Shown here piece by piece: positions 5,856 through 63,327 of a stretch of DNA of 64,000 nt. Numbering within the stretch: the first letter of the stretch is position 1; every line of letters starts with the position of its first letter. The DNA comes from Octopus sinensis. Taxonomy: Eukaryota. The notes below the pieces were generated by a model, which worked only from the letters and a program-made list of their open reading frames with translations, was not told the DNA's origin and made no database searches. The position numbers were made by a program, and so were the translations under genes. The stretch lies in the NCBI RefSeq assembly GCF_006345805.1, contig NC_043020.1:18786001-18850000 (forward strand), given 5' to 3'.

Positions 5856-6408
5856 GAGTGTGAGAGCAGTGCATGCCATCAAAGTGACACTGGGGTAAAA
5901 TATACGAAGCCCAATATACCCATCATGACTACCCGTCTGATAAGGGTACACCAAGCACATGCATCACAACCATATGTGCGCGACATGGTGATCTCATATC
6001 AAGATAAACAGCACATGACCTTGCAGGTGGGGCCCAGTTAGAATTTTCTTCAGGTTGAGTAGCCCATCCCACTCAAACGGTCCCTGAATAAGGGTTGTTT
6101 AAGGATGTTGAAAGAACCACCCATGTTTCCAGAGGTGAATTATTCAAACCCCAGAGAATCCCTCTCAACACATGGCTATGATGCTCCCCCACTACTTCTG
6201 CTCGTGATCAGAGATGCACATATCGTCAGCCACTAAGGGACATGCTCAACTGGTTAAGGTCAAACAACTGACAAGCAAATCTGTGGTATTGAGCAGAATA
6301 TTTGCTGTAGCCCATCTTTTATACCAAGACAAAACAATGTACATGATAACATTCCAATCAGTTAAGATCAGAAGCCATGAGGCAGCCTGCCTGGTACTGC
6401 ATCAGGGC
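5856..6408 (-). mobile_element. Family C, ~554-bp non-coding element in (AAT)n, copy 1
   Basis: Near-identical to 9433-9970, 55825-56296, 56619-57092 and 62774-63327; strand inferred from (AAT)n polarity. Confidence 0.85.
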
Positions 6409-6476
6409 ATTATTATAATTATTATTATTATTATTATATTATATTATTATTATTATTATTATTATTATTATTATTA

Positions 6477-7540
6477 GCATCTTCTTTCAATTCTGTTTCC
6501 ATTTCTTGCCGAGTATCTTCCTCATACCTAGGGTAGAGAAACGTACAGTATACATTGTTAGGCCATTAAAACAAGCACACCAGATTGTTCATTTATAGAG
6601 TCATGTGATAGAGAAAAAGGAAAAAAATAAAAAGTAGAAAAGTAAACAAATGAAAATAAAGAGGGAAAAGTAAAGAAAATTCACAGCGACAATGCTCTTA
6701 TCAATACGTGTGACGTACCAGTTAAGACAAACTTTTGCACTTCCTGCATGAATGTTAATTATCTAAGAATGATATCTGTTAGCAGGGATCATTCTTAGAT
6801 AATTTTCAGTTCCTTCTTTTATCATTCCAAGTGCTCCTATAATCAATGGTATTGTAACCGTCTTGATATGCCACATTTTTTCGATTTCGATTAGCAAGTC
6901 TTTATTTTCTGAGCTTATCAAATTCTTTTGCCAAGATATTATGGTCGCAATGTATGCTCATGTCAATCAATAAACAGACTTTATCGCTTTTGTCTTTCAC
7001 AATAATATCTGGTTTATTTTCCTTGATGGTCCGATATATACATACTGGGAAGTCCCAAAGAATAGTTACATTTTCTCCCTCAGTTACAGCCTCAGGGTGG
7101 TGCTTATACCATTTGTTAGCAGTCTTGATTTTATAAAGCCGACACATTATCCAATGTAGATATTGGCCAACTCTGTCATGTTTTGATTTGTACCCTACCG
7201 GTGCTAAAACCTTACATCCAAAGATTAGGTGGTGTACTGTTTTAATCCCATCGTTGTAGTATCGGCACTTTGGGTCTACACCATTTTTGGCTTGATAGTT
7301 CCGTGTCAATAAGCTCTGATCTTGGACAGCCAAGATAAAGCCTTCACTCTCTGCATTTAAACCTGAGCTCCTTAGCCACTGATGGGTATGCTTCTGATCT
7401 ACATCTGCATGTTTACTACAGGCCACATATTTGCCATGCAGAGGTTTTTGTTCTCACCTATCAGCCAATCGTTCAAATACATTGGTTTCACCTTCTTTGA
7501 AACTACAGTTGCTACACTTCCCTCAGGCTGTCTGGGGTGG
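6477..7540 (-). mobile_element. R4/Dong-like RLE LINE, 3' part (zinc knuckle, RLE, 3'UTR, (TAA)n tail)
   Basis: ORF 6902-7426: QWLRSSGLNAESEGFILAVQDQ, CRYY...HHLIFGC, KHDRVGQYLHW, KPDIIVKDK..LLIDMS; C-terminal LTGTSHVLIRALSL* near 6683; ends in (TAA)n. Confidence 0.9.
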
Positions 7541-7544
7541 GGGA

Positions 7545-8323
7545 TAATGCAGTTTCACACCTCTCCTTGAAAAATGCATTGTTTTGAAAAACTTTTTTTC
7601 GGATTCCAGTGTTTTAGATGTCGAACATCACGAATATGCAAAAGAAAATTAACTCCTGCCCCGTCTCCTTTAAAATTTTGAACATTTTCGAAAAAATGTT
7701 CCCCTTATGTTTTTAGATGACGGAGATTCCGAATATGCAAGAAACCACGTTTTCAAAATTTTAAATTCAATAAGCTTATAGATATTATGTTACAAAGAGA
7801 TAGATAGGAATGTCTACCTGGGGCTAAAAATAACAGTAACGCGTCCTCTTCTATGGGACCGCTACTTTTAGTTGACAAATATATTTTATGAATAAACGAA
7901 CAGGGATAAATAGACAAACAGATAAATAAATAAATGAATGAAAAAGTTCAAAATTTAAAATTGGGGGAGGGGTGAAATTCATAACATTAATTATTAAACA
8001 TTGTTTGTTTCTCATAAAATGGTGTATATTTAATTTAATTTACATTAAATTATTATTTATGATTATTTAAGGCAAACACAAGCAAAACGCAAATTCGTTT
8101 CACTTTAATGTTTTTGCCTGCATTTAATTTCGATTTGCATTTCGCTACGATCTCTTTAAAGTAAACAAAATCAAAAATTTTAATTGGTGGAGAAGTGGGA
8201 GGGGGGAATTAATACTTTTTTTTTTTTTTGCATATTCGTAATTTCGACATCTAAAACGTAGGAATCTGAAATTTTTTTTTTCAAAAAAATGCATTTTTCT
8301 AGGAGAGGTGCGAAACTGCATTA
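7545..8323. mobile_element. Non-autonomous DNA transposon (MITE-like) inserted in the Dong-like LINE
   Basis: About 100-bp imperfect terminal inverted repeats (taatgcagtttcacacctctcct...gaatatgcaaaa); LINE coding homology resumes on both sides. Confidence 0.75.
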
Positions 8324-8324
8324 G

Positions 8325-60254: not shown

Positions 60255-60415
60255 TTGACTCGATGCCGAGCAAATTCTTAGCTATGTCGTCCATCTTCGC
60301 GTTCTGAGTTCAAATTCTGTCGGAGTCGATAAATTAAGTACCAGGCAAGTACTGGGGGTTTATGTGATGGACTATCCCACGCCGCTCAAATTACAAGCCT
60401 TGTGCCTATAGTAGA
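60255..60415 (+). mobile_element. SINE family B, diverged copy
   Basis: ttctgagttcaaattctg...gtcgataaattaagtacc...ccttgtgcctatagtagaaa. Confidence 0.7.
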
Positions 60416-60523
60416 AATAATAATAATAATAATAAAAACGATAATAATAATAATAATAATAATTATTATTATTATTATTATTATTATTATTATTATTATT
60501 ATTATATTATTATTATTATTATA

Positions 60524-61810
60524 ATGTTTGAACCTCGCAAACAAACTTGTTAAACGAAACCACCATGGATGATAGGTGCTATGGACAAAAAATAAACCAT
60601 CTCTTGTACATGGATGACCTAAAACTTTTCCCTAAGAGCGCCATGGAACAGAGAAAACTTATAAAAATTGTCCAGTGTCAGCAATGACATCGGAATGAGC
60701 ATGGGGCTGGACAAATGTGCCGGAGTCACAATGAGAAGAGGCAAATTATTCAGCATTAAAAACACTGCACTTGACATAGACACAGAAATTAGAGAATTGA
60801 ACCACAGCCGCCCATACAAATAGCTAGGGATAGAAGAAACAGCTAAAATACAACACACTGAAATGAAAGAGAAAATTAGGAGAGAGTATTACAAAGAAAT
60901 TTCAGTGTTTAATATTAGGCTAACTCTTCTGACTTAGACTAATATTAAACACTGAACTTAATGCTAAAAATGAGATAATAAAGATAAACACGCTAGCCAT
61001 ACCAGTCATGAATTATAGATTTAACATCATAAGCTGGAAGGTCAGCAAAGTGAGAAACCTAGATAGAAAAAACAGAAAGCTGCCGAAGTCACCACCCGAA
61101 AGCAGACGCAGACAGAATACATCAGACCCGTTCAGAAGGAGGCCGTGGCCTGACATAGATAGAAAGCTACTATAAAATAACAACAGTTGGACTAGCAAAG
61201 TACTTAGAAACAAAGAGTGAGAGACTGCTGTATGTTGTAAAACAACACGAGAAAAAGGAAACGCTTTTCTCTATACACAAGGAGGCGACAAAATACAAAC
61301 CAGAAACAAATAAAAACTCACACACTGATCTCAGACGACAATATAGCAGAAATGGTCAAAGTGACAAAAAACAACATGAAAATTGAATTACAAAATATAC
61401 CGAAGAAGAAATGGAGAGAAAAATCACTTCATGGCCAATACTCTGCAAGGCTTGACAGAGAGGAAGTGAGCATAACTAAAAGCCAACAATGGCTCAAAAC
61501 CTTTACACTAACGGCCGAAATACAAGGACTGATTCTCGCTGCACAAGACCAATGACTTGAAGCAATTACAAAAGCAAAATAATGAAAACAGTCCTCAACA
61601 CCGAATGCAGAATGTTCAACCAGCACAATGAAGGAATTGACCAGATTATCTCGGGTTACCCAGTCCTTGCCAACTCTGATGTATATACAAACACGGCAAA
61701 GTAAACAGTTATATCCACTGAACAATATGCCAACGATACAGTATCCAAACTGACAACAGGGGTTATAAGCATGTGCCAAGCAAGGTACAAGACAACGACC
61801 AGGCCACGGG
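60524..61810 (+). mobile_element. R4/Dong-like LINE fragment, RT to zinc knuckle
   Basis: INHLLYMDDLKLF, GLDKCA, KINTLAIPV, EGGRGL, KSLHGQY, QQWLK..AEIQGLILAAQDQ; starts at an AAT/ATT array. Confidence 0.88.
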
Positions 61811-62773
61811 TGATGTGGGTCGTTTGTTCCTACATATGCCCAAGGCATTTTTGTACTTTGCTCTCAGGAGCATTTTCCACCAGCCAAGACTTGACTCCGA
61901 TGCAACGGTATGTGACCGTGCATCTTGCGATATTTTCTATCACGTCAGGGGGGGGGAGGTGAGCTATCCTTCTCCCATTTCTTTTTACAATTTTTTGTTG
62001 CAAATTTTAATTCTTCTTCATCTATGTGGAAGCATTCCATATATCTCTCCGCTGGCGCAAAAGACGCAGAGGTGATATTTTCATTTTTATGTTTTATTTC
62101 TTTCGTGTTGTTGTTGTTGTTGTTGTTGTTGTTGTTGTTGTTGTTGTTGTTGTTGTTGTTGTTGCTGCTGCTGCTGTTAATGGTGATGTTCTCTTTGTCG
62201 ACACCGAAAGTTTTGACGTTGCTTAGAGAAGAAACATTTTTCGCCTCGGTGACGTCACTAAGTTTAGGTCATTCGATGTTGATATTCTCAATTCTTTCCT
62301 TGTTCCCGAAATTTCTCGACAAGGAGCACGGTCGTTTGTCGAATATTATGATGGTTTCTTTATCAGCCATTAAATAAAAAAATTACAGAAAATTGCAAAA
62401 TATTTGTTTTTGGTTAAAGCAGTTAAAATTCAAAAATTGTTTATGCCCACTACTTGCAAAACAGAGTGCATTTCTACACAAAAATACTATCTACACAATC
62501 TAGACAATCTCTGAAAGGTAATGGTAACAACAGAAATGAAAAGATTACAAGCACTTTTTCAACTTACGGAACACCAAATTTCTGTGACTTCAAAGTATGG
62601 CAGCCATAATAATAATAATAATAATAATAATAATAATAATAATAATAATAAATAATAATATAATAATAATAATAATAATAATAATAATATATAATAATAA
62701 TAATAATATTAATAATAATAATAATAATAATAATAATAATAATAATAATAATAATAATAATAATAATAATAAT

Positions 62774-63327
62774 GCCCTGATGCAGTACCAGGCAGTGGCT
62801 CTCATGGCTTCTGATCTTAACTGATTGGAAGTGTTATCATGTACATTGTTTTGTCTTGGTATAAAAGATGGGCTACAGCAAATATTCTGCTCAATACCAC
62901 AGATTAGCTTGTCAGTTGTTTGACCGTAACCAGTTGACCATGTCCCTTAGTGGCTGACGATATGTGCATCTCTGATCACGAGCAGAAGTAGTGGGGGAGC
63001 ATCATAGCCATGTGTTGAGAGGGATTCTTTGGGGTTTAAATAATTCACCTCTGGAAACATGGGTGGTTCTTTCAACATCCTTAAACAACCCTTATTCAGG
63101 GACCTTTTGAGCGGGATGGGCTACTCAACCTGAAGACATTTCTAACTGGGTCCCACCTGCAAGGTCATGTGCTGTTTATCTTGATATGAGATCACCATGT
63201 CGCGCACATATGGTTGTGATGCATGTGCGTGGTGTACCCTTATCAGACGGGTAGTCATGATGGGTATATTGGGCTTCGTATATTTTACCCCAGTGTCACT
63301 TTGATGGCATGAACTGCTCTCTCACTC
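62774..63327 (+). mobile_element. Family C, copy 5 (full length)
   Basis: (AAT)n-gccctgatgcagtacc...gaactgctctctcactc-(AAT)n. Confidence 0.88.

Follow-up and report, generated by a model that had tools for sequence, protein, structure and literature searches.

A 64,000-nt stretch of the Octopus sinensis genome (contig NC_043020.1, positions 18,786,001 to 18,850,000; hereafter the window) contains five copies of a ~554-bp non-coding repeat, here called Family C, which are embedded in (AAT)n microsatellite arrays together with fragments of Dong/R4-like long interspersed elements (LINEs). The window is ~64% A+T, microsatellite-rich and populated by many interspersed repeats, and AAT-type arrays make up 3.0-3.4% of it. 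With the 554-bp unit as the query, BLASTN returned exactly five Family C matches in the window, referred to as C1 to C5 (Table 1). C3 and C4 are found in a 794/796-bp tandem duplication (region 55552-57140) that includes the flanking microsatellite, and over the element they are 100% identical if two 1-nt indels (472 versus 474 bp) are disregarded; this duplication either is very recent or was introduced by the assembler within a long stretch of microsatellite. As C3 and C4 represent one duplicated insertion, the five copies correspond to four independent insertions, the same count as that given by an initial annotation of this DNA made from its letters alone. C1, C2 and C5 are 95.9-96.7% identical to one another (3.3-4.1% difference) and 93.0-94.3% identical to C3/C4 (5.7-7.0% difference).

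All five copies share the 3' end ...CTCTCACTC, which is followed directly by AATAAT. The terminal pattern across the copies is CT(C/A)(T/C)CA(C/T)TC, always entering AATAAT in the same phase, and the aligned end ...CTGCTCTCTCACTC carries one substitution in C1 and one in C2. The 5' ends lie at position 1 (C5 and C1), 17 (C2) and 81 (C3/C4) of the unit. The 5' terminus of C1 is that of C5, GCCCTGATGCAG, and is located immediately 3' of (AAT)n; in every copy, the truncated ones included, (AAT)n of the same polarity directly touches the first base of the element. A constant 3' end combined with 5' ends at 1, 1, 17 and 81 is the pattern of target-primed reverse transcription that the initial annotation had recognized, and its description of the termini needs a single correction: the full-length and minus-80-nt starts and the fixed 3' end stand, while the deletion given as ~18 nt in C2 is 16 nt. 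Its further claim that the element has (AAT)n on both sides in the same polarity, and lies only inside such arrays, holds for all four independent copies of the window. Given the share of the window occupied by the arrays, four of four random insertions would fall into them with a probability of ~1e-6, which is smaller still when polarity is also required. The occurrence of four independent insertions in arrays, all with a single polarity, is far beyond chance.

Table 1. Family C copies, LINE fragments and AAT-type arrays in the window (RT, reverse transcriptase; SINE, short interspersed element; UTR, untranslated region; aa, amino acid positions of the full-length LINE relative).
Feature	Positions	Strand	Remarks
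C1, Family C	5856-6408	-	Full length, 553 bp; 96.8% identity to C5 (BLASTN)
C2, Family C	9433-9970	-	Without first 16 nt; followed by (AAT)7 and then 5'-truncated LINE L-a
C3, Family C	55825-56296	-	Without first 80 nt; tandem duplicate of C4
C4, Family C	56619-57092	-	Without first 80 nt; 100% identical to C3
C5, Family C	62774-63327	+	Full length, 554 bp; BLASTN query/self match; (AAT)n on both flanks
L-a, Dong/R4-like	6477-9411	-	tblastn match 9404-6684, aa 237-890; 5'-truncated at ~aa 237 of P0001
L-b, Dong/R4-like	54685-55551	-	tblastn match 55551-54852, aa 645-890, plus 3'UTR
L-c, Dong/R4-like	58102-58604	+	tblastn; adjoins large C4 array
L-d, Dong/R4-like	60541-61808	+	tblastn, aa 355-771; same strand as C5
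Fifth RT fragment	47892-48482		More distant
(AAT)12, SINE fragment 5606-5819, (AAT)n	5369-5855	-	Downstream end of train
(AAT)n	6409-6476	-	Between 3' end of L-a and 5' end of C1
(AAT)n array	9971-10102	-	Upstream of C2; tail of SINE copy 10103-10400
(AAT)n/(ATG)n stretch	55552-55824	-	Between C3 and L-b
(AAT)n/(ATG)n array	57093-57979	-	Upstream of C4; polarity read on - strand
(AAT)n array	62606-62773	+	Upstream of C5
(AAT)n/(AGT)n array	63328-63500	+	Downstream of C5

Family C is interrupted by stops in all six frames, has no terminal inverted repeats, contains no tRNA detectable by ARAGORN and no B box inside any of the five copies, and matches no Rfam family, ribozymes included, at the gathering threshold or at E<=10. 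The lack of a coding open reading frame (ORF), of terminal inverted repeats and of RNA polymerase III boxes had been claimed from the letters and is thus borne out. A protein search with five concatenated Family C reading frames gave no match. Derivation from tRNA, 5S RNA or 7SL RNA, as in many SINEs, or from another known RNA family was rejected on the grounds that there is no tRNA, Rfam or B-box match. The element ends in GCCCTG... and ...CACTC, and neither the TG..CA ends of a solo long terminal repeat (LTR), nor the terminal inverted repeats of a miniature inverted-repeat transposable element (MITE), nor the TC..CTRR ends of a Helitron are present, while the 5' ends vary. The copies also cannot be read as the 5'UTR of a LINE: all of them end at the same base and then (AAT)n, the LINEs downstream begin at aa 237 and aa 645, and this combination of intervening (AAT)n and differing truncation points separates the element from the LINEs. 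A LINE 5'UTR and a solo LTR, the two identities that had been named as fatal to the original proposal, are both contradicted by these observations.

Copies outside the window were recognized through their accidental translations. When Family C translated in an antisense frame was compared with the protein collection, eight entries were obtained, of which six are 'uncharacterized proteins' of O. bimaculoides and two are unnamed MetaClust entries, and to these a second search added one Logan contig and a further two entries from O. bimaculoides. The O. bimaculoides entries (A0A0L8H6S8, A0A0L8HJ33, A0A0L8FNA5, A0A0L8HEN8, A0A0L8HZY0, A0A0L8FX38, A0A0L8IHV3 and A0A0L8GJS7) are whole or partial translations of Family C in various frames, some of which run into poly-Asn or poly-Ile encoded by the AAT repeat. 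These 'uncharacterized proteins' are very likely spurious gene models, and as accidental translations they can be used as independent copies of the element. The translation P0124 passes the position-1 terminus into poly-Ile, corresponding to (AAT)n on the 5' side, and P0121, P0123 and P0126 of O. bimaculoides reach the same terminus; the recurrence of position 1 in these four models argues for a genuine 5' end and not a random truncation. At the other end, P0130 reads ...TAFSL followed by 11 Asn, i.e., the 3' end and (AAT)11, and in P0129 the 3' end is followed by five Asn, i.e., (AAT)5, and by a second copy that starts near position 80. The Logan contigs L001 and L002 contain a copy of 78% identity that covers positions 147-554 and has the same 3' terminus. 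These outside copies speak for an element whose 5' end is discrete and whose 3' end is constant and runs into AAT repeats. The conserved 21- and 30-mers of Family C had no match in two scans of metagenome contigs and one scan of prokaryotic genome contigs, and a full-text literature search with Family C oligomers returned nothing useful.

Several further features of these copies were observed. L001 (1-1379, SRR11869390) and L002 (SRR11869385) are the same contig assembled from two runs; if those runs are RNA-seq, this copy is transcribed within a longer RNA. In P0121 and P0123 the position-1 terminus is preceded by TAAT and Family C positions ...133-147, and P0123 reads through at least three such ~147-nt units (Family C 1-147, window positions 62774-62920). 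Some copies therefore seem to carry tandem 5' modules of ~147 nt, which recall the promoter monomers of mouse L1, although they may be an artefact of spliced gene models. A perfect TATA-box-like sequence, TATAAAAG, is located at 62860-62867, which are Family C positions 87-94; it is found at the same site in other copies and reads TATAAAAA in C3/C4. This site lies just a few bases downstream of the start of truncated C3/C4 (position 81) and of the second copy in P0129, and the proximity may be a coincidence, the 5' end of a subfamily or the trace of a promoter element.

The LINE fragments of the window were mapped by tblastn with full-length relatives, e.g., P0001. These relatives, found across metazoans, each have a single ORF of ~890-1000 aa, and the closest solved structures to P0001 are R2 proteins. 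L-a is degraded by frameshifts and stops and has (AAT)n on both sides; its translation contains an RT with YMDD, then a CCHC motif and then KPDIIV..IDMS..KYKDL, the pattern of a PD-(D/E)XK restriction-like endonuclease (RLE), while its scores for Pfam RVT_1 and zf-RVT are under their cut-offs. L-b follows C3 within one array and terminates at (AAT)n. Both L-a and L-b carry RT, CCHC and PD..D..K motifs, have (AAT)n flanks that match their orientation, and have arrays and strand in common with Family C. Judged by architecture and target, the neighbouring fragments are members of the Dong/R4 clade. The initial annotation had placed two Family C copies directly upstream of LINE truncation points, and this was confirmed for C2 and C3, whose LINEs begin at ~aa 237 and ~aa 645 of the full-length relative, respectively. 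Within L-a, a ~0.8-kb insertion at ~7530-8350 (-) breaks the LINE ORF between aa 598 and 624; it has terminal inverted repeats of ~40 nt (ggaggctaatgcagtttcgcacctctcc... / ...ggagaggtgtgaaactgcattatcccc) and looks like a MITE-type DNA transposon.

The elements of the arrays form co-oriented trains. On the minus strand, the train from 10400 to 5369 reads SINE, (AAT)n, C2, (AAT)7, L-a, (AAT)n, C1, (AAT)12, SINE fragment and (AAT)n, and that from 57979 to 54593 reads large (AAT/ATG)n array, C4, array, C3, array, L-b and (AAT)n; the arrangement at C5 on the plus strand is (AAT)n, C5 and (AAT/AGT)n. Wherever an array precedes a Family C copy, it forms the tail of an element inserted earlier. An assembly gap of 100 N (35432-35531) has unique sequence on one side and a TG microsatellite on the other. 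The Family C copies, AAT arrays, LINE fragments and repeat pairs all stop short of it, the nearest Family C copies being >20 kb off. The gap matters only for how the left cluster (5.3-10.4 kb) is linked to, and oriented against, the right clusters (54.5-63.5 kb); the orientation of each copy relative to its own array is unaffected.

The SINE of these trains is an abundant octopus family that ends in ...GCCGCCTTC followed by a short AAT-type tail. Copies at 5606-5819, 10103-10400 and 60257-60415, all on the minus strand, are found in arrays that also hold Family C, and ~10 further copies are located elsewhere in the window, e.g., at 3608-3828, 24753-24965, 29379-29543, 43780-43924 and 53332-53748, where the stretch 53332-53699 is a SINE in a 184-bp tandem duplication. 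The AAT tails of this SINE look like the seeds of arrays that were later occupied by Dong-like LINEs and Family C.

Several published observations bear on the identity of the enzyme. Dong elements target (TAA)n, also in a mollusc, a snail (PMC3812793), the LINEs of the R4 clade, which carry an RLE, are mostly target-specific (PMC4640811), and among the recently active LINEs of O. vulgaris, Dong-R4 forms the largest class (PMC13282606). We propose, with a probability of roughly 0.75, that Family C is a non-autonomous non-LTR retroposon that is inserted by target-primed reverse transcription into a (TAA)n target. This proposal is based on the fixed 3' end, the discrete 5' end with truncations, the non-coding sequence, the lack of DNA-transposon or LTR features, and the restriction to one polarity of one microsatellite. 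The complete proposal, in which a Dong-type LINE is also the source of the enzyme, is held with less assurance but still seems rather more probable than its negation, as the link to Dong is circumstantial and consists of co-occupancy of the arrays and the known target of Dong. The suggestion of the initial annotation that Family C is a non-autonomous parasite of Dong is accordingly kept in its first half, a non-coding unit that is confined to (AAT)n in the window, and stays circumstantial in its second.

Under the proposed mechanism, a discrete Family C RNA of ~554 nt that encodes nothing would be used as the template. A LINE-encoded protein would nick one strand of a (TAA)n/(AAT)n array, and reverse transcription, primed at the nick, would start at the fixed 3' end of that RNA. 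The cDNA would then be joined to the upstream repeat, and joining that sometimes took place before the 5' end of the RNA was reached would give rise to the 5' truncations. The protein would most likely be supplied by a Dong/R4-type LINE with an RLE, because such LINEs have (TAA)n as their target and are found in these very arrays with the same orientation. The arrays that receive new insertions would have originated as AAT tails of retroposons already in place, and co-oriented trains would be built up in this manner. We infer the RNA intermediate, the identity of the LINE partner and the mode of RNA recognition, which may involve the 3' sequence or pairing of a (UAA)n tail with the nicked target.

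A number of results weigh against this proposal or against parts of it. Within the window it is based on only four independent insertions. Among the outside copies, the element in L001 is followed only by AATAATACTAATAA, 14 nt of AAT-like sequence, before unique DNA, and that in P0122 meets non-AAT sequence near position 12, where the gene model may be spliced; both are possible exceptions to residence only inside arrays. Co-orientation of Family C with LINEs is real, but it is expected of any two elements that have the same polar target. The initial annotation had stated that each copy lies near a Dong-like fragment on the same strand: the tblastn matches confirm this, with the corrections that L-c, a further fragment beside the C4 array, is in the opposite orientation to Family C, and that ~0.8 kb of unrelated sequence lies between L-d and the C5 array. 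Comparison with Dong-like 3' ends gave no similarity: when Family C was aligned locally with those of L-a and L-b and with the sequence ending at the C5 array, the scores were at the level of shuffled sequences; the 3' ends compared are those readable in the window, two of them certain and one a candidate, and they also differ from one another. Either the partner is another family, possibly with a parent LINE elsewhere in the genome, or recognition is independent of a common 3'UTR.

The structural results belong to the same side of the balance. Three hairpins had been noticed in the 3' third of the element, and all three are present in the minimum-free-energy fold, but they are not above chance: the 3' 178 nt are no more stable than their shuffles (z = +0.34, with 128 of 200 shuffles as good). 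None of the 17 pairs shows a two-sided (compensatory) change among the few, mostly close sequences that were compared, and the diverged L001 copy disrupts four of seven pairs of helix 1 and two of five of helix 2, so that two of the three helices are broken. The fold of the whole element has a z of -1.85, and seven of 100 shuffles fold equally well. At the 5' end, a ribozyme like that of hepatitis delta virus (HDV) was found neither by Rfam at E<=10 nor by a home-made double-pseudoknot descriptor applied from -40 to +30; the descriptor, which was used without a positive control, gave a solution in eight of 100 shuffles versus none in Family C. It was also considered that the element might be an ancient dimer of ~250-bp units, given two short repeats with a spacing of 248-257 nt, and this was rejected as the alignment of one half with the other is not above shuffles (61 of 300 as high).

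The AAT repeat could be the element's own tail instead of its target, with Family C mobilized by a non-site-specific LINE, e.g., of the RTE type that is the partner of cephalopod SINEs, and with tails that attract or absorb insertions and then expand. That the window SINE, which is mostly dispersed, also ends in a short AAT tail makes this explanation worth keeping; the short AAT-like stretch after the element in L001 and the derivation of every array upstream of Family C from the tail of an earlier element point in the same direction. A dispersed mode of insertion would, however, not be expected to place (AAT)n of the same polarity at the 5' junction of four of four independent copies, including those truncated at 17 and 81, and residence in arrays differs between the two families, with four of four for Family C versus three of 12 matches for the SINE (Fisher p = 0.019). 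There is also no likeness to the 3' end of the SINE by eye, no formal alignment having been run. On balance, we regard it as unlikely that the repeat is the element's own tail and not its target.

Fixed 3' and variable 5' ends are equally compatible with Family C being the 3'UTR of an autonomous, (TAA)n-specific LINE that has no full-length copy in the window, all copies then being severe 5' truncations, and octopus has several Dong-R4 families with different 3'UTRs, five recently active ones being recorded in O. vulgaris. Severe truncation would hardly produce the exact 5' terminus GCCC(T/A)GATGCAGTACC that is common to two independent copies of the window and at least four O. bimaculoides gene models, and the 5' part of the copies has neither coding sequence nor LINE similarity, which makes such a 3'UTR quite improbable. 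Transposition might even be dispensed with altogether, if the sequence had spread by segmental duplication or unequal crossing-over, inside single AAT arrays or from one array to another; the perfect tandem duplication of C3/C4, flanking microsatellite included, and the C-(AAT)5-C tandem of P0129 in O. bimaculoides would fit this. The three loci nevertheless have different array structures and 5' ends and have diverged by 3-7%, and outside C3/C4 they have no unique flank in common, so that spread by recombination alone is very hard to credit.

For LINEs with an apurinic/apyrimidinic endonuclease (APE), non-autonomous partners are well known, whereas for site-specific RLE LINEs they are rare, with the short internally deleted elements (SIDEs) of R2 as the textbook case. 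The rarity that the initial annotation had assumed for SINE-like partners of RLE LINEs is thus real, but such partners are already known in the form of the R2 SIDEs (PMC3414825). R2 supports these non-autonomous elements in trans, and the SIDEs retain an HDV-like ribozyme (PMC3414825) of the kind that in Bombyx Dong cleaves exactly at the junction of (TAA)n and the element (PMC3774820). Like Family C, the SIDEs of Drosophila (Eickbush and Eickbush, 2012; PMC3414825) are short and non-coding, have the target and orientation of an RLE-type LINE, and combine a fixed 3' end with 5' junctions that vary; for both, target-primed reverse transcription in trans is the presumed route of propagation. They differ in having the recognizable 5' ribozyme and 3'UTR of the parent R2 and 28S ribosomal DNA as the target, whereas Family C has a microsatellite target, no similarity to the available Dong-like 3' ends and no detected ribozyme. 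Because neither a ribozyme nor a shared 3' end was found, Family C is not shown to be a SIDE-type derivative of Dong.

The Dong/R4 LINEs themselves (Bombyx Dong, DongAg, DongBg of Biomphalaria and octopus Dong-R4) have the (TAA)n target, the polarity and the type of 3' junction seen in Family C, and are physically interleaved with it in the same arrays of the window; they are autonomous elements of ~3-5 kb with a single ORF for RT, CCHC and RLE, in contrast to the 554 bp of non-coding sequence in Family C, for which no relationship to their sequences is detectable. Canonical SINEs, including the Ceph-SINEs (Kojima, 2018; PMC5786205), are likewise short, non-autonomous and LINE-dependent and may have a microsatellite tail, but Family C lacks a head of tRNA, 5S or 7SL type as well as A and B boxes, is larger than most of them, and in the window is inserted in one microsatellite where the SINE copies are mostly dispersed. 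That a non-autonomous element can have the same target preference as a sequence-specific LINE has a precedent in SINEU with Tx1 in crocodilians (Kojima, 2015; PMC4494074), which may also depend on transcription from flanking sequence, and which differs in its APE-type Tx1 partner, heads derived from small nuclear RNA and transposon targets. According to a survey in 2018, only the RTE, Ingi and R2 clades yield bipartite non-autonomous LINEs (PMC5786205). Since non-autonomous partners of target-specific LINEs are already known, what would be new here is a (TAA)n-resident non-coding element associated with Dong/R4. Octopus repeat libraries probably already contain Family C as an unclassified entry.

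In a more tentative form of the proposal, which we put forward as a possibility with the odds against it, Family C would be a dedicated parasite of Dong/R4 that carries no sequence derived from its partner, with the 5' module, which seems to be tandemly repeated in some O. bimaculoides copies and contains TATAAAAG, serving as a promoter and the 3' end or a (UAA)n tail being sufficient for precise copying into (TAA)n by the Dong protein. If this were true, Family C would be the first SINE-like partner described for the R4/Dong clade and would offer site-specific retrotransposon proteins a natural RNA 'cargo' of minimal size. Copying of a short RNA into (TAA)n by a Dong-type protein without a common 3'UTR would show what such proteins need from the template, a requirement that bears on R2-like proteins for targeted gene insertion. 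For octopus genomics, the proposal accounts for the co-oriented repeat trains in AAT microsatellites, gives a class to one of many unclassified repeat families, and marks spurious O. bimaculoides 'uncharacterized proteins' as Family C translations.

Other features of the AAT arrays include the 5' ends of the plus-strand fragments L-c and L-d, which adjoin (ATT)n arrays of opposite polarity (57857-58110 and 60416-60545, respectively), and head-to-head (AAT)n/(ATT)n junctions at 60416-60520 and 17045-17112. These opposite-polarity junctions may stem from opposed insertions or from inversion during integration. The window further contains an unclassified interspersed repeat family of ~440 bp with at least 10 copies of 70-90% identity, found at 2651-3090, 4320-4740, 19069-19283, 22402-22570, 28717-29122, 37460-37827, 41690-42110, 45124-45371, 50874-51248 and 59204-59579, and one copy of this family terminates at the (AAT)n array 19019-19070.

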